Sequence record: OP380604.1
Length of the DNA: 64,000 nucleotides
Strand: one strand, 5' to 3'
Positions 1 to 14,088 of this stretch are shown here, piece after piece. A program made the position numbers and the translations under genes. Position 1 is the stretch's first letter; the number at the start of each line of letters is the position of its first letter. Below the pieces are notes generated by a model that saw only the letters and a list, made by a program, of their open reading frames with translations, searched no databases and had not been told where the DNA came from.

Positions 1-69
1 GTAGCTCATTGGTAGAGCACTCCCCTGATAAGGGAGGGGTAGACAGTTCAACTCTGTCCACGGCTACCA
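1..69 (+). tRNA. tRNA-Ile(GAU), 5' end truncated by window
   Basis: D arm GCTC/GAGC, anticodon stem CTCCC/GGGAG with loop CTGATAA, T arm GACAG-TTCAACT-CTGTC, ends ACCA. Confidence 0.9.
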
Positions 70-94
70 AATTCAACAACAATGAGAGAATAAA

Positions 95-190
95 ATGAAT
101 CTAATAATCCCGGTATTGTTCTTGTGTGATAACGATCATCAAGACTGTCACCCAGATGGATGTTTTTATTGTTCGCATTATTATTTGTAG
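95..190 (+). CDS. 31-aa Cys/His-rich micropeptide (MNLIIPVLFLCDNDHQDCHPDGCFYCSHYYL)
   Basis: Read manually; GAGAG upstream of ATG; fills gap between tRNAs. Confidence 0.4.
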   Translation: MNLIIPVLFLCDNDHQDCHPDGCFYCSHYYL

Positions 191-197
191 TTTAAAC

Positions 198-272
198 GGT
201 GTATTAGTATAATGGCTATTATTCGTGACTGTCTATCACAAGATACGGGTTCGATTCCCGTATACACCGCCA
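198..272 (+). tRNA. tRNA-Asp(GUC)
   Basis: Acceptor GGTGTAT/ATACACC, loop CTGTCTA, T loop TTCGATT, GCCA. Confidence 0.92.
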
Positions 273-558
273 GATTTTCTGCCTAGCAGGAAAGAAAGAA
301 CTTACCCGACAAAAGTTTAGTTCTTAGTTCTTTGAATAGTTTGACTGGATTCACTTCTGCAAACACATACAAACTCGAAATCTACTATTAATGGATAGCA
401 CTCCTTTACTTCGGTACTTGGATGTGCGGCTGAGAGGGAACAGCATATAAAAGTAACGCGGGTTAGTCACCGCTCCCGTATGTGAATCCGAAGACTTGCG
501 ATAATCACTTGCAAATAGTGATTATTCTAATGTATACTTTCGAGTATCTATTAGAATC

Positions 559-634
559 GGGGGTTTAGCTCAGTTGGGAGAGCAACTGGTTTGCAACCAG
601 TAGGTCAAGGGTTCGAATCCCTTAACTTCCACCA
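559..634 (+). tRNA. tRNA-Ala(UGC)
   Basis: Cloverleaf, G3.U70, loop TTTGCAA, ACCA. Confidence 0.95.
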
Positions 635-641
635 AATTTAA

Positions 642-716
642 GCGGGATTAGCTCAGAGGTAGAGCGTCAGCCTTCCAAGCTGTTCGTCGCCGATTCGAAT
701 TCGGTATCCCGCTCCA
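642..716 (+). tRNA. tRNA-Gly(UCC)
   Basis: GCGGGAT/ATCCCGC, loop CTTCCAA, TCCA. Confidence 0.95.
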
Positions 717-722
717 GACATT

Positions 723-797
723 GTGCCGGTAGCCAAGTGGTAAGGCAAGTGATTGCAAATCACTTTATCGTCTGTTCAAATCAGATCCGGTACTCCA
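723..797 (+). tRNA. tRNA-Cys(GCA)
   Basis: GTGCCGG/CCGGTAC, loop TTGCAAA, U73, CCA. Confidence 0.93.
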
Positions 798-813
798 TAA
801 TTGAGGGTCAACG

Positions 814-909
814 ATGTTGATTAAATCGATTTTAAAGATGTATACTGATAACTGTTGGCGTTGTGGTTATTACGGCAGTAAATGCATTTGTGATAGTCCA
901 TACGCTTGA
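814..909 (+). CDS. 31-aa CxxC...CxC micropeptide (MLIKSILKMYTDNCWRCGYYGSKCICDSPYA)
   Basis: Read manually; GAGGG RBS at 803-807; four Cys in zinc-ribbon-like spacing. Confidence 0.45.
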   Translation: MLIKSILKMYTDNCWRCGYYGSKCICDSPYA

Positions 910-933
910 TCAAACAACATTGAGAAATAAGTT

Positions 934-1359
934 ATGAGCTTACCTAGTTATGCGCTGTTCATGAAGAACGGCGATTGTGTTGGGTCATGCTTTATCAACT
1001 GCGGTTGGTGGCATGATGAACCTCGCACACTGAAACAAATAATTCGTTATACCGAAACCGATGAATGTCCTATTGACTATGATAGCGTAATCGCGTATGG
1101 TGTTACGTATAGCAATGACTTAGAATTCGAGCTTCTGAAAGCAGAAGAAACGGAAGCTAAGTTAAAAGAGATCGCTGAAAATAAGCGTAAGCAAAGTTGG
1201 GAAGATTTACATCAGAAGATGATCGAACGGATGAAACCGATTGATCGAATGCTTCCTGAATTGATTGCTGCTGAAATATACGGAGTTCAGCCAATGAATG
1301 AACATGTTCCTAACGTTTTTTCGTTGAAGGTAGTTTACGGCGATGATATTTCTTGCTAA
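934..1359 (+). CDS. Hypothetical protein whose C-terminus resembles the T4 gp23 major capsid segment containing the Gol peptide
   Basis: RMLPELIAAEIYGVQPMNEHVPNVFSLKVVYG vs gp23 RAIPNLIAFDICGVQPMNSPTGQVFALRAVYG. Confidence 0.75.
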   Translation: MSLPSYALFMKNGDCVGSCFINCGWWHDEPRTLKQIIRYTETDECPIDYDSVIAYGVTYSNDLEFELLKAEETEAKLKEIAENKRKQSWEDLHQKMIERMKPIDRMLPELIAAEIYGVQPMNEHVPNVFSLKVVYGDDISC

Positions 1360-1543
1360 GATACGTTATATGAAAAGCGAATACATGGGTTCATCTAAAT
1401 CATTCGATACCATTAAACTGGTAGAAGCAGAAGATGCAGACGAGGCCGATAGCAAAGTTCGCGAATATTACAACGACAAAAGTTCAGATTATGGCACATA
1501 TTATTCTGTGCTGGATGTTTCGATTGAAGAACCGATTAGGTGA
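1343..1543 (+). CDS. Hypothetical protein
   Basis: 66-aa ORF tiling with neighbours. Confidence 0.65.
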   Translation: MIFLAKIRYMKSEYMGSSKSFDTIKLVEAEDADEADSKVREYYNDKSSDYGTYYSVLDVSIEEPIR

Positions 1544-1546
1544 ATT

Positions 1547-1735
1547 ATGAGTAAAGAAATTCGAATGAGGTTTACATTAAAAGAACTGAAACAAATGATT
1601 GAACTTGCGGAAACCAATAACACAACTCTCGTTGATGTTGGTTATACCCCGGGTAGTATCAGTTCTATGGTTAGAGCTAAACCTGTTGTTAAAGATGCCG
1701 AATTCGTAGACATTACCGATTACGATAGTTGGTAA
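1547..1735 (+). CDS. Hypothetical protein
   Basis: 62-aa ORF, AGGTG RBS. Confidence 0.7.
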   Translation: MSKEIRMRFTLKELKQMIELAETNNTTLVDVGYTPGSISSMVRAKPVVKDAEFVDITDYDSW

Positions 1736-1745
1736 AAATAATTAT

Positions 1746-1816
1746 AGGGGCGTAGCAAATCGGTTATGCGGCGGATTCCAAATCCGTTGAGGTGGGTTCG
1801 ACTCCTACCGCCCCTG
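1746..1816 (+). tRNA. tRNA-Trp(CCA), CCA end not encoded
   Basis: AGGGGCG/CGCCCCT, loop TTCCAAA, T loop TTCGACT. Confidence 0.9.
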
Positions 1817-1825
1817 CAAAATAAC

Positions 1826-1901
1826 GCGCCGTTAGCTTAGTCGGTAGAGCATCGGACTTTTAATCCGAGGGTCGGTGATTCGAGTTCACCACGGCGCACC
1901 A
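1826..1901 (+). tRNA. tRNA-Lys(UUU)
   Basis: GCGCCGT/ACGGCGC, loop CTTTTAA, ACCA. Confidence 0.95.
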
Positions 1902-2113
1902 AATAGTCGAGTCATGTTGTTAGTCATGACTAACAATGTGGCGACAGGCTATAAAAAAGCGATAGATTGAAGAAGGGGCGAATAACTTAAACGTTACTAT
2001 TGACTTCCTCGCGCTTCTGTTACTGCGGCTTATGAGCGGTGGTAATAGTTAAATCTCTTTACAACACCAAGTGTTGATTATTGCCTCGGTATCTGATACT
2101 CTGGATACCGTCT

Positions 2114-2188
2114 AGTGAATTAGCTCAGAGGTAGAGCAAGTGCTTCATACGCACTGGGTCACTGGTTCGAATCCAGTATTCACTACCA
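2114..2188 (+). tRNA. tRNA-Met(CAU), elongator type
   Basis: AGTGAAT/ATTCACT, loop TTCATAC, ACCA. Confidence 0.9.
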
Positions 2189-2230
2189 AATAATCGCGCT
2201 TAAACCGCTGATTCACGTTTAAGCCTTCTC

Positions 2231-2304
2231 GGGGACGTAGATAACTACACAATCGCAGGTCACTGGGATCTGAGATACGGGTGGAAATCCCGTCGTCTCC
2301 ACCA
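2231..2304 (+). ncRNA. tRNA-like RNA with Ala-type acceptor and non-canonical loops
   Basis: GGGGACG/CGTCTCC+ACCA (G3.U70), stems GAT/ATC, CAGGT/ATCTG, ACGGG/CCCGT; loops lack D-loop GG, U33 and TTC. Confidence 0.7.
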
Positions 2305-2308
2305 AATA

Positions 2309-2435
2309 TAAGTGCATTGCCCTAAACATCATTGGACGAGATAAGCCCTCGTATGGAGCCAACGAGCCGCAAGCTTGTAGCAATCAAAGGCTAGTCAGTG
2401 GGTACTACCTGACGGGGATCGCGACAGTGCATTTA
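2309..2435 (+). ncRNA. Putative multibranch structured RNA
   Basis: 11-bp closing stem 2309-2319/2425-2435; inner hairpins ACGAG/CTCGT and GTCAG/CTGAC; no ORF. Confidence 0.45.
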
Positions 2436-2444
2436 AATTTGGTA

Positions 2445-2451
2445 CTAAATA
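2445..2451 (+). promoter_or_regulatory. Putative T4-type late promoter (CTAAATA)
   Basis: Same heptamer recurs at 2899, 4690, 6777, 20924, 54084 just upstream of genes. Confidence 0.5.
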
Positions 2452-2475
2452 GACTTGCTATTAAAGGAGTTTATA

Positions 2476-2715
2476 ATGAGTAATGATTTAGACGCTCGCG
2501 CCAATCGTGGCTCGGGTAATCAATGCAGCAAAGCATGGTACGACGCTCCATTGTGGAAAAACGTTGGTCCACTTGCTAGAAAGAAAGCAGCGGAAGCCGC
2601 TGAAAAAGAAAAACAAAAAGATGTTTACTCTACTGCGGAAACATGCGATAATGTTCCTGTTGTTGAAGAAGACTTAAAAGCAAAACAAAGACGATTGTTT
2701 AGTTTCGCTTACTGA
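2476..2715 (+). CDS. Hypothetical protein (79 aa)
   Basis: AAGGAG RBS before ATG 2476; ends QRRLFSFAY. Confidence 0.7.
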   Translation: MSNDLDARANRGSGNQCSKAWYDAPLWKNVGPLARKKAAEAAEKEKQKDVYSTAETCDNVPVVEEDLKAKQRRLFSFAY

Positions 2716-2719
2716 CAGA

Positions 2720-2795
2720 TCTCCGTTCGTCTAGTGGACTAGGACACTGCCCTTTCACGGCGGTAACATGGATTCGAATTCCATACGGAGAACCA
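2720..2795 (+). tRNA. tRNA-Glu(UUC)
   Basis: TCTCCGT/ACGGAGA, loop CTTTCAC, ACCA. Confidence 0.95.
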
Positions 2796-2815
2796 AATTG
2801 ATTAGTGCGCTAAGA

Positions 2816-2888
2816 TGCGAGTTGGAGGAGAGGCCGTCCTCGCTGGGCTCATATCCCAGAGATCACCTGTTCGAATCAGGTACTCGCT
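2816..2888 (+). tRNA. Initiator-type tRNA-Met(CAU) embedded in a 14-bp flanking stem, no CCA
   Basis: 1:72 mismatch (T.T), GGG/CCC anticodon stem, loop CTCATAT; flanks 2802-2815/2889-2902 pair. Confidence 0.8.
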
Positions 2889-2914
2889 TCTTAGCGTACT
2901 AAATAAAGAATAAT

Positions 2915-3006
2915 GGATGTGCTGCAATGACGGTGGTATTGCACCAGACTGTAAATCTGGCCCCACAGGGTAAACATTGTAGGTTCGACTCCTACCGCAT
3001 CCACCA
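2915..3006 (+). tRNA. tRNA-Tyr(GUA)
   Basis: GGATGTG/CGCATCC, loop CTGTAAA, long variable arm, ACCA. Confidence 0.93.
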
Positions 3007-3012
3007 AATTTC

Positions 3013-3084
3013 GCCTCTATAGCTCAGTGGTAGAGCAACTGCCTTGTAAGCAGTAGGTCCTCGGTTCGAGTCCGAGTGGGGGCT
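3013..3084 (+). tRNA. tRNA-Thr(UGU), CCA not encoded
   Basis: GCCTCTA/TGGGGGC, loop CTTGTAA. Confidence 0.9.
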
Positions 3085-3168
3085 CAGTAAGAGGGATCCA
3101 GATGCCCCGTTTGCAGCATCTGGTATGTAACTCGTTACATAAATGCTTTCTTTCGAGTGATCATTTAT

Positions 3169-3244
3169 GTGACGGTAGTTCAGTTGGTAGAACTCCAGGT
3201 TGTGATCCTGGTAGTCACGGGTTCGAAGCCCGTCCGTCACCCCA
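3169..3244 (+). tRNA. tRNA-His(GUG)
   Basis: GTGACGG/CCGTCAC, loop TTGTGAT, C73, CCA; -1 base is T. Confidence 0.93.
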
Positions 3245-3249
3245 ATCAC

Positions 3250-3325
3250 GGGTCCTTAGCTCAGTTAGTAGAGCATATGCCTGAAGAGCATAGTGTCCTC
3301 GGTGCGATTCCGAGAGGGCCCACCA
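3250..3325 (+). tRNA. tRNA-Phe(GAA)
   Basis: GGGTCCT/AGGGCCC, loop CTGAAGA, T loop TGCGATT, ACCA. Confidence 0.9.
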
Positions 3326-3350
3326 GTTTAATCGCTTTGAAAGGTGAAAT

Positions 3351-3456
3351 CGCTAATGCTTTTAAGTGCAATGAGATAACTTCTCGAAAGTCGGGATATA
3401 GATTGCCCCGTCGGTATTGATTTCATGTAGAGTTCGATTCTCTACCTTAGCGTCCT
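3351..3456 (+). ncRNA. tRNA-like RNA with enlarged central domain
   Basis: CGCTAA/TTAGCG acceptor-like stem, T arm GTAGAG-TTCGATT-CTCTAC, ATGAGA/TTTCAT stem enclosing ~44 nt. Confidence 0.55.
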
Positions 3457-3472
3457 ATTATAAAAGAATATT

Positions 3473-3549
<77 letters not shown>

Positions 3550-3675
3550 GAGTTGCCTGTAAAGGCCCGTTAAAGAGAATGCTAACAATGTCCTAGGAAA
3601 CTTTGTTAGAAGTCCAGCTGAAAATTCCCTCTCCCGTTTTGAACGGTGATGCGATTTAAGGGGCGAGTGATTCAC

Positions 3676-3704
3676 TTGTGGATCATTTCAAAGTATTCTA
3701 ATAT
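3676..3704 (+). promoter_or_regulatory. Putative sigma70-like promoter with -10 in hairpin loop
   Basis: TTGTGG-N17-TAATAT; arms 3687-3699/3705-3717. Confidence 0.45.
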
Positions 3705-3835
3705 AGAGTTCTTTGAATTGATTCAAGCGTTGCATCGTTTGAATATGTGGAGTTACCTTAGTAGGCCGTAGAGATACGTTGTCCGAAAGATAAGACGATG
3801 ATCCACGTTAAACGTTCATATTCGTCCCAGTTTAT

Positions 3836-3911
3836 AGGGGATTCGCCTAGTTGGCCCAAGGCACCGGGTTTGATCCCGGTATCACAAGTTCGAATCTTGT
3901 ATCCCCCGCCA
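3836..3911 (+). tRNA. tRNA-Gln(UUG)-like with 6-nt anticodon loop
   Basis: AGGGGAT/ATCCCCC, CCGGG-TTTGAT-CCCGG, T loop TTCGAAT, GCCA. Confidence 0.75.
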
Positions 3912-3919
3912 AATTTAGC

Positions 3920-3948
3920 TTGCAAAGGCTAAAATGAGCTGCTATGAT
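3920..3948 (+). promoter_or_regulatory. sigma70-like promoter with -10 in hairpin loop
   Basis: TTGCAA-N17-TATGAT; arms GAGCTGC/GTAGCTC. Confidence 0.55.
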
Positions 3949-4050
3949 TCCCGTAGCTCGTTAAATTATCAAACGGGAAGGTGATGCGCGTATGTAGCCA
4001 GAACGTAATGTTCAAGAGTCATGACGACATAGAGCCGTGTCGAAGAATTT

Positions 4051-4142
4051 GGAAGCGTGGCAGAGTATGGCTTATTGCAACTGACTTGAAATCAGTCAGT
4101 CGAGAAATCGGCCCGTGGGTTCAAATCCTACCGCTTCCGCCA
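4051..4142 (+). tRNA. tRNA-Ser(UGA)
   Basis: GGAAGCG/CGCTTCC, loop CTTGAAA, long variable arm, GCCA. Confidence 0.95.
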
Positions 4143-4166
4143 AATCAAACAATAGAGAGTTATATT

Positions 4167-4388
4167 ATGAAAGCGACAAAACAAGATCTTGAACTAGCAT
4201 CCCGTTTCGCTGATAAAGCTGATTCATACGGTTTCGCTACTACTCAAGGTGATGCCAAATGTACCAATCAACAAATCGAAAAGCTGCTAAAGCTTGGACT
4301 GATTAAAGTTACTCGCGGTGTTCACTGCATTGGTCAGAAAGATTTTGGTGGTTTTGTTCGAAGAGGCACTCACTATTGCAAAGCTTAA
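4167..4388 (+). CDS. Hypothetical protein (73 aa)
   Basis: GAGAG RBS, ATG 4167 (longer ORF-track start overlaps tRNA-Ser). Confidence 0.7.
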   Translation: MKATKQDLELASRFADKADSYGFATTQGDAKCTNQQIEKLLKLGLIKVTRGVHCIGQKDFGGFVRRGTHYCKA

Positions 4389-4498
4389 AACGAGAGATCG
4401 AGGAAAATGTAAGAGCCTCGTTCGAGTTATCCGGCAAGCGTGTTACTGATTCTCAATGGGAACAGATTAAACGAGTTGCTGAATACATCAAAGAACAT

Positions 4499-4586
4499 GG
4501 AGAAATGACAGAGAGGCCGAACGTAGCGGATTGCTAATTCGTAGGCCCGCAAGGGTCCGTGGGTTCGAATCCCACTTTCTCCTCCA
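4499..4586 (+). tRNA. tRNA-Ser(GCU)
   Basis: GGAGAAA/TTTCTCC, loop TTGCTAA, long variable arm, CCA. Confidence 0.92.
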
Positions 4587-4588
4587 AT

Positions 4589-4666
4589 GCACCAATGATG
4601 GGAATTGGTCTACCTGGCTGATTTAGATTCAGTCGCTTCTCGGTTCGAATCCGAGTTGGTGCACCA
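4589..4666 (+). tRNA. tRNA-Leu(UAG) with short variable loop
   Basis: GCACCAA/TTGGTGC, loop TTTAGAT, variable loop only CGCTT, ACCA. Confidence 0.88.
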
Positions 4667-4689
4667 AATAAATTGGTAGCCGCATACGT

Positions 4690-4696
4690 CTAAATA
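4690..4696 (+). promoter_or_regulatory. Putative late promoter (CTAAATA) for the endonuclease
   Basis: 16 nt upstream of ATG 4713. Confidence 0.55.
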
Positions 4697-4712
4697 ATAC
4701 AAATAAAGTATT

Positions 4713-5441
4713 ATGGAGAACGTTATGGCTACTCATAGAAAACCGGAACAAATAGAAACTACCGATCTTTGTAAATATGGATGCGGAAATATCGCAAAAT
4801 ATAAAAGTGTTGGTGGGAATCTGATGTGTGAATGTTCGTCAAATAAATGTCCGGTTAATATAAAAAAGAATTCAGAAAAACTAAAAGCACTATATGATTC
4901 TGGTATGAGAAAATCCGGAGCGGAGCTGTATAAATCTCTTAGCCACGACATCAAAACTAGAATGTCGTGGAGTAAAGGATTAACAAAAGAAACCAATTCC
5001 GAACTGGAGAGACCAACTTTGGTTGGTAAACGGTTTGGTGCATCATTGTACGGCCACACAGAAGAATCAAAGCGCAAGATTTCCATAGCCAGAACGGAGT
5101 GGCTAAAGAAGACTGAAAACCGAACGAATCTTGGAAGATTCAAAAAGTCTTGGATGGAAGAAACATTTGAATCGTATCTAAATGAAAATAAAATTACGGG
5201 TTGGATAGCAGAGAAACACTTCTACTCTCCTGTTACAAAGAAAAATTATTATGTTGACTTTCTCTTTCAAGAAAAGATGCTTATATTAGAATTGGATGGA
5301 ACCCAACATAGAAAGTCTATAGAACATGATAAACAAAGAGACTTGTGGTTCAATAGTATTGGATACAAAGTTATAAGAGTTCCGGTTGACGAATTCAAAC
5401 GGAGATTTTTCTCCGGGGTTGGGTTTATCGATCTACTGTAA
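4713..5441 (+). CDS. Free-standing homing-type endonuclease: Cys-rich N-terminus, NUMOD3-like motif, DUF559/Vsr-like PD-(D/E)XK domain
   Basis: CKYGCG..CECSSNKCP; GHTEESKRKISIAR; YVDFLFQEKMLILELDGTQH..DKQRDLWFNSIGYKVIRV. Confidence 0.82.
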   Translation: MENVMATHRKPEQIETTDLCKYGCGNIAKYKSVGGNLMCECSSNKCPVNIKKNSEKLKALYDSGMRKSGAELYKSLSHDIKTRMSWSKGLTKETNSELERPTLVGKRFGASLYGHTEESKRKISIARTEWLKKTENRTNLGRFKKSWMEETFESYLNENKITGWIAEKHFYSPVTKKNYYVDFLFQEKMLILELDGTQHRKSIEHDKQRDLWFNSIGYKVIRVPVDEFKRRFFSGVGFIDLL

Positions 5442-5446
5442 TAAAT

Positions 5447-5471
5447 AAAAGGGAGCTTCGGCTCCCTTTTT
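5447..5471 (+). terminator. Intrinsic terminator
   Basis: AAAAGGGAGC-TTCG-GCTCCCTTTTT. Confidence 0.85.
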
Positions 5472-5486
5472 CATTAGGAGTATAAT

Positions 5487-5873
5487 ATGAGTTTCAAAGA
5501 GTTTAAAGGCGATACAAACTCAAGTGTTGGCGAACTAATTTCCAAGCTTCTGAAAAGCGTGGCATACGTTCATCACCAACACCTGACTACTACTATCTAT
5601 AGCCGTCACAAAGCGCTCCAAGCGTATTACGAAGAACTTCCAGAGCTGATTGATAGCTTTGCAGAATGCGCTATCGCTCGTGGATATGCTCAGAGTTTTA
5701 CAGCTACTCATGCGGAAGTTGAAGTTGAAATGATGATTGACAATTTCCTGCAAGAGTGTACTATGGTGCATGAGTATTTGGAGACTAAACGCCATTTCGA
5801 TCTGGTGAATACACTGGAAGATATCATGACGTTTTTGACTTCGATTAGATACAAATTGAATCTTAAAGGTTGA
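5487..5873 (+). CDS. Ferritin/Dps-like four-helix protein
   Basis: HHQHLTTTIYSRHKALQAYYEELPELIDSFAE motif typical of T4-like phage Dps-like proteins. Confidence 0.7.
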   Translation: MSFKEFKGDTNSSVGELISKLLKSVAYVHHQHLTTTIYSRHKALQAYYEELPELIDSFAECAIARGYAQSFTATHAEVEVEMMIDNFLQECTMVHEYLETKRHFDLVNTLEDIMTFLTSIRYKLNLKG

Positions 5874-5899
5874 CTATCATTAGGAACTGTGTAATAATG
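5870..5899 (+). promoter_or_regulatory. Early-type promoter with inverted repeat around -10
   Basis: TTGACT..TAATAAT; arms TAGGAACTGT/ATGGTTCCTA. Confidence 0.65.
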
Positions 5900-5913
5900 G
5901 TTCCTATAAACAT

Positions 5914-5988
5914 GGCCCCGTAGCTGGAGGGTTCAAGCTGGCAGCTCATAACTGCTTGATGTGGGTTCGATTCCCACCGGGGCCACCA
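5914..5988 (+). tRNA. tRNA-Ile2(CAU) (lysidine type)
   Basis: GGCCCCG/CGGGGCC acceptor and loop CTCATAA resemble enterobacterial ileX; ACCA. Confidence 0.8.
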
Positions 5989-6009
5989 AATTCATCTGAG
6001 GAAATAATC

Positions 6010-6785: not shown

Positions 6786-6870
6786 AGGTGTCAGTTGTAA
6801 GTCTCAATTGGAAGAGCTACTGGGCAGAAACCCAGTGGGGTGCGGGTTCGAGTCCTGCCTTCTGACGCCT
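6786..6870 (+). ncRNA. tRNA-like RNA with extended acceptor stem, 6-nt anticodon-position loop, no CCA
   Basis: AGGTGTCAG/CTGACGCCT, D arm CTC/GAG, ACTGGG-CAGAAA-CCCAGT, GCGGG-TTCGAGT-CCTGC; CTAAATA at 6777. Confidence 0.6.
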
Positions 6871-13966: not shown

Positions 13967-14088
13967 GGGGAAGTAGCTCAGTGGTAGAGCAGTAGTCGCA
14001 AAAAGCGGAATCTGATTAAGATTCTTTACCGCAAACCCTTGCAAAATCAAACTGTTGGTCGTGGGTTCGAATCCCACCTTCTCCGCCA
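13967..14088 (+). ncRNA. tRNA-scaffold RNA C (54-nt insert in anticodon loop, G3.U70, GCCA end)
   Basis: GGGGAAG/CTTCTCC, D arm GCTC/GAGC, GTAGT/ACTGT stem, T arm GTGGG-TTCGAAT-CCCAC. Confidence 0.78.

Follow-up and report, generated by a model that had tools for sequence, protein, structure and literature searches.

The 64,000-nt stretch of DNA analysed here (record OP380604.1, referred to below as the window) comes from the T4-like Aeromonas phage avDM12-TAAL (Straboviridae, Chrysonvirus; 100% match), and its positions 1-6000 are occupied by an array of about 20 transfer RNA (tRNA) genes, all on one strand. Inside this array, at 2231-2304 on the + strand, lies a 74-nt tRNA-like element which is very probably a functional RNA selected for tRNA shape and for alanine identity. 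As regards its role, the reading which we favour, with a probability of roughly 45%, is that of an RNA derived from a tRNA-Ala which would be charged by alanyl-tRNA synthetase (AlaRS) and used outside ordinary decoding, either as a decoy or as an alanine donor. The element is annotated in none of nine GenBank records (avDM12 and its relatives), and no description of it was found in the literature searched; the genome paper of the related phage Aeh1 gives 24 tRNAs and three tRNAscan-SE pseudogenes without detail (PMC1524935).

A complete cloverleaf with altered loops

Re-reading of the window reproduced what an earlier note, made from the sequence alone, had described at this site, namely the sequence itself, the stems, the G3.U70 pair, A73 and the CCA end, as well as a D loop without GG, A33 in place of U33 and a T loop TGGAAAT. 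The parts of the element are the following:

2231-2304, + strand: whole tRNA-like gene, including A73 and the encoded CCA (sequence; 105.9 bits with the covariance model R1 described below)
2231-2237, + strand: 5' strand of the acceptor stem, GGGGACG, G1 to G7, with G3 at 2233; pairs with 2294-2300 (7 pairs)
2240-2254, + strand: D arm, with a 3-bp stem GAU/AUC and a 9-nt loop AACUACACA lacking GG; in Ahp1 and the metagenome lineage, both sides of pair 11-24 are changed (AU to UA)
2256-2272, + strand: arm at the anticodon position, with a 5-bp stem CAGGT/ATCTG and a 7-nt loop CACUGGG (A33; CUG at 34-36)
2273-2276, + strand: variable region AGAU, invariant in eight distinct sequences
2277-2293, + strand: T arm, with stem ACGGG/CCCGU and loop UGGAAAU (G55 and G56 replace psi55 and C56)
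2294-2304, + strand: 3' strand of the acceptor stem, CGTCTCC (U70 at 2298), followed by A73 (2301) and CCA (2302-2304); U70, A73 and CCA are invariant

All 20 pairs of a cloverleaf template (7, 3, 5 and 5 in the successive stems) are present in the element. When this template was threaded through some 128,000 segments of 74 nt, on both strands, 20 of 20 pairs were obtained only for a tRNA-Trp and for the element, the next best segment reaching 17. Since these two alone among about 128,000 satisfy all 20 pairs, a chance origin of the cloverleaf is excluded. In the D arm, written as DNA, the loop reads AACTACACA, and the GAT/ATC stem is flanked by an A.A mismatch. The minimum free energy fold of the single sequence rearranges this arm (-27.7 kcal/mol versus -22.9 kcal/mol for the cloverleaf), the D stem being accepted despite this refolding because it is supported by covariation. 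An alternative D-arm pairing given by RNAalifold (AUC with GAU) was discarded, as it is broken by the U to A change found at position 24 in Ahp1, which keeps the D stem.

The loops depart from the canonical state in part, since G18G19, U33 and the UUC of the T loop (T54-psi55-C56) are missing, while U8, A14, U54, A58 and the G53-C61 pair are kept. Moreover, a C32-G38 pair is possible, by which the stem would be lengthened to 6 bp and the loop shortened to 5 nt. In a normal tRNA, residues 19 and 56 form a pair and residue 18 is stacked between 57 and 58; the A-site finger, L5 and the L1 stalk of the ribosome, and likewise RNase P, make use of the outer face of that pair (PMC4810234). All four elbow residues 18, 19, 55 and 56 are replaced in the element, where a reversed pair, between a C of the D loop and G56, would be possible.

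It had been anticipated that tRNA finders would miss the element, and this was borne out. ARAGORN called 19 tRNAs in the window, the element not being among them, and with the Rfam tRNA model (RF00005) it falls below the gathering threshold, its tRNA match scoring less than the 21.5 bits of its match to the transfer-messenger RNA (tmRNA) model. This latter match, to be set against a gathering score of 47, aligns with the acceptor and T arms and concerns the ends only, 324 positions of the model being replaced by 32 nt. The same phage has a normal tRNA-Ala(UGC), at 559-634.

Conservation and covariation in three lineages

The element is present in nine Aeh1-like phages at 94.6-100% identity, the relatives which carry it being phiAS5, phiWae14, AsFcp_1, AsFcp_2, AsFcp_4, PX29, Ah1 and Aeh1, from three genera, with 70-74 of the 74 positions identical. 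Its site is constant in these relatives, with a tRNA(CAU) gene before it and an open reading frame (ORF) of 79 codons after it. The flanks are less conserved: in PX29, 131 of 178 positions of the upstream Lys-Met spacer and 120 of 140 positions of a downstream 140-nt module are identical, and in Aeh1 the upstream flank is unrelated, similarity starting within two bases of G1. The tRNA(CAU) gene next to the element, described below, has likewise diverged far more than the element itself. In addition, a metagenomic relative accumulates 16 substitutions and 4 indels in 2307-2475 and none in 2231-2304.

The Aeh1-like group alone offers too little variation for a test of the fold. A covariance model (R1), built on six distinct Aeh1-like copies, recognized a homolog in the tRNA array of Aeromonas phage Ahp1_CNU-2021 (69.3 bits), and a third variant was obtained on three metagenome contigs (68.3 bits) by a pattern scan followed by R1, the pattern having required the 3' end TCCACCA. 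With R1, no homolog was found in phage 65, AS-zj, phi-ST2, GomatiRiver_11 or the tRNA region of T4. Of three pattern scans of IMG/VR, one combined the T loop GGAAAT and an Ala-type end, one took the conserved core, and one joined the loop, AGAT and the 3' end; all that they returned were the known Aeh1-like phages and chance matches. A core-pattern scan of 185,579 prokaryote genomes gave at least 120 matches, and among the matches listed none stood in a tRNA-like context. Two GC-rich metagenome matches (L148 and L188; 22 bits) were dropped, as they have no cloverleaf fold. So far, then, the element is known only from Aeh1-like and Ahp1-like Aeromonas phages.

The alignment used for covariation comprises eight distinct sequences from the three lineages. 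Each stem shows one double compensatory change: 4-69 from GC to AU in the acceptor stem, 11-24 from AU to UA in the D stem, the second pair of the stem at the anticodon position from AU to UA, and 52-62 from GC to AU in the T stem, this last change occurring on both sides in Ahp1. Taken together, 98% of the cells are paired; with the partners displaced by one to three columns, the figure is 34-57%. One-sided changes between GC and GU accompany the double ones. The acceptor stem keeps all 7 pairs in the eight distinct sequences, with 7-66 passing from GC to GU; at the anticodon position, four of the eight sequences have G-C where the stem otherwise has G.U; and in the T stem 49-65 is AU, GU or A.C, 50-64 (CG) and 51-63 (GC) being invariant.

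Among the fixed positions are those on which alanine identity depends. G3.U70, A73, CCA, G1-C72 and G2-C71 are constant in all three lineages, while 4-69 and 7-66 vary, so that the alanine marks named in the earlier note (G3.U70, A73 and CCA), together with G2-C71, have held up across lineages. Its further statement that all the loops had diverged stands in part. The D and T loops are indeed non-canonical in every lineage: the former is variable, with always at least two C and never GG, and the latter reads UGGAA, CGGAA or UAGUA according to lineage, followed by 2-4 nt, with U as the usual first base and an unvarying G in third and A in fifth place. The loop at the anticodon position, however, is strictly conserved and is the most conserved part of the molecule, and the T loop keeps U54 and A58. 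CACUGGG is the same across lineages with a single exception, phiWae14, where C34 is replaced by U (CUG to UUG). Because of this strict conservation, the loop is taken to be functional rather than drifting.

These data bear directly on the possibility of a functionless tRNA-Ala pseudogene. The fact that tRNA finders miss the element would be in line with such an origin, it may be one of the three pseudogenes of the Aeh1 paper (PMC1524935), and two stem mismatches occur in some relatives. Nevertheless, four compensatory double changes, invariant loops and a conservation well above that of the flanks speak against it, and we consider it very improbable. The earlier note had likewise judged the element unlike a decaying pseudogene; the covariance search in relatives revealed compensation, and stem decay, named beforehand as the sign to the contrary, was not seen. 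Since the homologs show compensatory stem changes and not stem decay, the comparison points to a cloverleaf under purifying selection and not to a pseudogene in decay.

A candidate alanine carrier outside ordinary decoding

An acceptor-stem scan of IMG/VR returned about 60 canonical tRNA-Ala genes (UGC, CGC and GGC) in phage contigs which have the same acceptor stem, A73 and CCA as the element. From this identity we conclude that the element descends from a tRNA-Ala. As for its processing, the trailer after the CCA starts with AAU, as it does behind 10 canonical tRNAs of the array, and no site was found when the + strand of the array was scanned for terminator-like sites; from this trailer and the lack of a terminator we infer co-transcription and excision with the neighbours. 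The RNA would thus be transcribed within the tRNA array and excised in the same way as the adjacent tRNAs, by RNase P at G1 and by trimming of the 3' end to the encoded CCA. It may be added that the Trp, Met (at 2816) and Thr tRNAs of the array have no encoded CCA, and that a nucleotidyltransferase of the CCA-adding type (PF01743) is encoded by avDM12 outside the window (L375, record positions 80215-80568), as well as by Aeh1 and Ahp1.

The features by which AlaRS recognizes its substrates are present in the element, that is, G3.U70 (G2233/U2298), A73, G1-C72, G2-C71 and the 3' CCA. For AlaRS, G3.U70 and A73 together are enough, even in minihelices, and through them the host enzyme would charge the RNA with alanine. 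Binding to EF-Tu was estimated from single-pair free energies relative to yeast tRNA-Phe (Table 2 of PMC3239215). The T-stem pairs 49-65 (AU or GU), 50-64 (CG) and 51-63 (GC) sum to between -0.7 and -1.1 kcal/mol, which is the tight end of the scale; the canonical tRNA-Ala of the phage (AU, AU, GC) gives -0.5 kcal/mol, the T stem of the element being at least as tight. The tight binding predicted by this estimate would fit a body evolved for carrying alanine.

Whether such a molecule might decode has to be considered in this context. The earlier note had remarked that, by decoding with CUG, it would insert alanine at Gln codons, and a true decoder, charged with alanine, delivered by EF-Tu and reading CAG (CAA and CAG in phiWae14), would do so on purpose. 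In favour of this are the conservation of the 5-bp stem and of the 7-nt loop, the triplet at 34-36, which is CUG or UUG and in either case a Gln anticodon, the purine at position 37 and the T-stem pairs of the tight EF-Tu class (Table 2 of PMC3239215). The proposal is weakened, however, by A33 instead of the near-universal U33, by the C32-G38 pair, which could close the loop to 5 nt, and by the rebuilding of the elbow surface that the ribosome reads (PMC4810234). Moreover, CAG makes up 35% of the Gln codons in 53 long ORFs of the window, much like AAG (39%) and GAG (26%), so that the phage's own proteins would be damaged, and the relatives bearing the element also own a normal 77-nt tRNA-Gln(UUG). 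Purposeful decoding is accordingly regarded as quite improbable, and selective poisoning of host translation via CAG was ruled out by the ordinary CAG usage of the phage. Because of A33, the possible C32-G38 pair and the rebuilt elbow (G55 G56, no G18G19), the element would not act as an ordinary decoder.

As to the tRNA-Gln(UUG) of avDM12 itself, it corresponds to the call "tRNA-???" of ARAGORN at 3836-3911 (+), with an anticodon loop of 6 nt in which a T run is one base short. The 77-nt versions are found in AsFcp_4, Aeh1 and Ahp1, and they are annotated as tRNA-Gln in the last two. The avDM12 copy reflects either a homopolymer sequencing error or a recent lesion.

Among known systems, the element would be most like a non-proteogenic tRNA, by analogy with other chargeable cloverleaves in which the UUC of the T loop is replaced. 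The staphylococcal non-proteogenic tRNAGly have UGC or UGU in that place (PMC7826273). With NP1-3 of S. aureus and S. epidermidis the element shares a full cloverleaf, the replacement of the T-loop UUC (by UGG, CGG or UAG in the element), the loss of psi55 and a position 19 which is not G. These tRNAGly are charged by the normal synthetase and kept from ordinary decoding (PMC7826273), two properties which the element would have in common with them. They differ in that theirs is a working Gly anticodon loop, with weak binding to EF-Tu and known Fem transferases (PMC7826273), whereas the element has a T stem predicted to be tight for EF-Tu, A33, a Gram-negative host, a viral gene and no transferase detected by Pfam.

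Other comparisons are more partial. With the tRNA-like domain of tmRNA and with alanine minihelices the element shares G3.U70, A73 and CCA, and its alanylation would not depend on the anticodon; unlike tmRNA, it has a full arm at the anticodon position, a non-UUC T loop, no mRNA-like part and no pseudoknots, and SmpB was not found in the phage. Phage tRNAs which escape host defences are likewise phage-encoded, placed in tRNA arrays and altered in their loops at positions read by nucleases (PMC10264068, PMC11555353), but they decode the codon of the attacked host tRNA, while the element joins an Ala acceptor to a non-Ala loop and a rebuilt elbow. YrlA and Y RNAs are also non-coding RNAs mimicking tRNA; the element, in contrast, has no CWGCAA within 2231-2304 and is an unpermuted 74-nt cloverleaf with CCA and without a handle. 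Finally, rnaC and rnaD of T4 (species 1 and 2) are likewise small and stable, have no known function and lie where a T4-type tRNA cluster ends, but they measure 119-139 nt and have neither cloverleaf nor G3.U70. R1 gives with rnaC a partial match at the T arm (9.7 bits, E 0.68), far below the true homologs. As observations on these old stable RNAs, both of which have tRNA-like ends, rnaC has, close to its 3' end, a canonical T arm, and rnaD (L075:1909-2172 on the - strand, with rnaC) has GCGCACCA at its end and AAU after it, in the manner of a tRNA 3' end with its trailer.

The main rival to an alanine carrier is an uncharged structural mimic of tRNA, which would engage, as decoy or ligand, a protein that binds tRNA, for instance a host defence nuclease directed at tRNA or a Ro60-like or RNA-repair protein of the phage, with G3.U70 and A73 merely inherited. 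The strictly conserved CACUGGG does resemble a binding site, a Ro60-like ORF, a HAD_SAK_2 protein and an enzyme of the CCA-adding type are common to avDM12 and Ahp1, and phage tRNAs that escape host defences targeting tRNA are documented (PMC10264068, PMC11555353). However, a G.U pair in the middle of a helix, if not needed, should drift to G-C or A-U as its neighbour pairs do, and yet it is invariant, together with A73 and CCA. Moreover, the stem-plus-CAGCAA handle of Y-like RNAs is missing from the element, and the co-occurrence with the Ro60-like gene is uninformative, the same pattern being shared by 110 ORFs. On balance, an uncharged mimic appears doubtful.

That figure comes from a phyletic contrast in which 110 avDM12 ORFs had a match in Ahp1 but in none of phage 65, AS-zj and GomatiRiver_11; among them are the Ro60-like gene, a HAD_SAK_2 RNA-repair domain and a PARP-like protein. 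The contrast tells little, since Ahp1 is simply the closer relative of avDM12, and Pfam applied to its ten largest ORFs gave the PARP-like protein, HAD_SAK_2 and a hexapeptide transferase, with nothing specific to tRNA. Two of these proteins, both shared with Ahp1, are encoded outside the window: the HAD_SAK_2 "Swiss Army Knife" RNA-repair protein at L328:19417-19905, and a protein of 1212 residues with a PARP-like domain at L327:8154-11789.

In the reading of the element as a special-purpose alanine carrier, the charged Ala-tRNA would serve either as a decoy, engaging a tRNA-binding factor through the conserved loop, or as a dedicated alanine donor. The earlier note had put forward a chargeable mimic that would be overlooked by nucleases recognising the loops, or an Ala donor for non-ribosomal chemistry. 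Several results weigh against it. Within the known families of Pfam and the proteins of the phages themselves, no match to FemAB (PF02388) or Acetyltransf_6 (PF13480) was obtained in avDM12 or Ahp1; none to Acetyltransf_1 (PF00583) or Acetyltransf_7 (PF13508) in avDM12, Ahp1 or Aeh1; and none to SmpB or the AlaX-type tRNA_SAD domain in the element-bearing phages. The T stem is predicted to be tight for EF-Tu, unlike that of the staphylococcal non-proteogenic tRNAs, and it is imperfect in some relatives, with an A.C mismatch at 49-65 in AsFcp_1, AsFcp_2 and Ah1 and another at 52-62 in AsFcp_1, an unverified record. The invariance of G3.U70 extends over three lineages only, one of which was found by a pattern requiring TCCACCA, and the sequence runs holding the stretch are only metagenomic contigs, from wastewater and similar sources. 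In a separate search for a target of the loop, its complement CCCAGTG proved no commoner than expected by chance, and none of its sites was a conserved one within a loop.

A more specific proposal can be framed within the same reading, namely that the element is the first virus-encoded non-proteogenic aminoacyl-tRNA, an AlaRS-charged alanine carrier which feeds an unrecognised tRNA-dependent transferase and is kept off decoding by its elbow and A33. Put in these terms the idea is unlikely; if true, the transferase might modify DNA, the envelope or protein, and a use of Gly-tRNA by a phage enzyme is described for Mom of phage Mu (PMC13219725).

The surrounding locus and its meaning

The element is followed by a second conserved structure, with which it overlaps at the CCA:

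2302-2442, + strand: conserved structured module of about 140 nt, a separate neighbour (RNAalifold on 8 phages; in all Aeh1-like phages)

The terminal helix of this module spans 18 positions (2302-2319 with 2425-2442), taking in the CCA of the element and the next 15 bases, and has one A.A mismatch in avDM12; it encloses several hairpins, one of which (about 2393-2413) varies from genus to genus through substitutions and an indel, with pairing apparently kept as far as can be read from the alignment. No match for the module was found in Rfam. It could be a stable small RNA or a processing site of the RNase III type, and it may be relevant to 3' processing in the Aeh1-like group.

This arrangement raises another explanation, in which the element would serve as a signal for processing or stability, or would form the 5' domain of a longer RNA, its tRNA shape only recruiting RNase P or 3' nucleases so that the downstream module or the messenger RNA of the 79-codon ORF is released or stabilised. 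The pairing of the CCA into the helix that closes the module, together with the presence of the module in all Aeh1-like phages, would agree with such a role. On the other hand, unrelated sequence follows the element in Ahp1_CNU-2021 and in the metagenome lineage, BLAST finding no module in Ahp1, and neither G3.U70 nor A73 nor a fixed 7-nt loop is needed for it. A signal of this kind is thus held to be improbable, and since unrelated sequence follows in these two lineages, the tRNA-like RNA is taken as the conserved unit and the module as its neighbour.

On the upstream side, the element adjoins the tRNA(CAU) gene at 2114-2188 (+), which exists in two forms at the same position among the relatives, that of avDM12 and AsFcp_1 and that of all the others, 55-57 of 75 positions being identical and the differences running throughout the stems. 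With flanks about 90% identical, this looks like a gene replacement inside the array. Between the two lies an 8-bp hairpin, GCTTAAAC ... GTTTAAGC, at 2198-2226 (+), just upstream of the element, which is kept in eight relatives and replaced by unrelated sequence in Aeh1.

Two further tRNA-like sequences of the window were noted outside the element. One, at 13967-14085 (+) and outside the array, is a tRNA-shaped RNA which scores 54 bits with the Rfam tRNA model and is missed by ARAGORN; it has G3.U70 but G73, its anticodon arm is enlarged by an insert of some 45 nt, and R1 matches it at 23.7 bits in the acceptor and T arms only. The other, at 6788-6869 (+), is unannotated and is missed both by ARAGORN and by Rfam at the gathering threshold; its terminal helix has 8 bp, its T arm is a canonical GGTTCGAGTCC, and a 6-bp stem bears the loop CAGAAAC (CA at 32-33, as in the element), and it has no CCA, a T-rich run following.

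The usual interpretation of phage tRNA arrays is that they supplement codons or serve as spares against host defences that cut tRNA, and the element fits neither description. Selection keeps in it the tRNA shape and the marks of alanine, while the features of decoding and of the elbow gave way to other conserved sequence. This also means that standard tRNA finders overlook selected tRNA-like genes in phage arrays. Should the RNA be charged, it would constitute a natural case of a virus keeping an aminoacyl-tRNA beyond ordinary decoding, and a pointer to a new partner enzyme or defence target.

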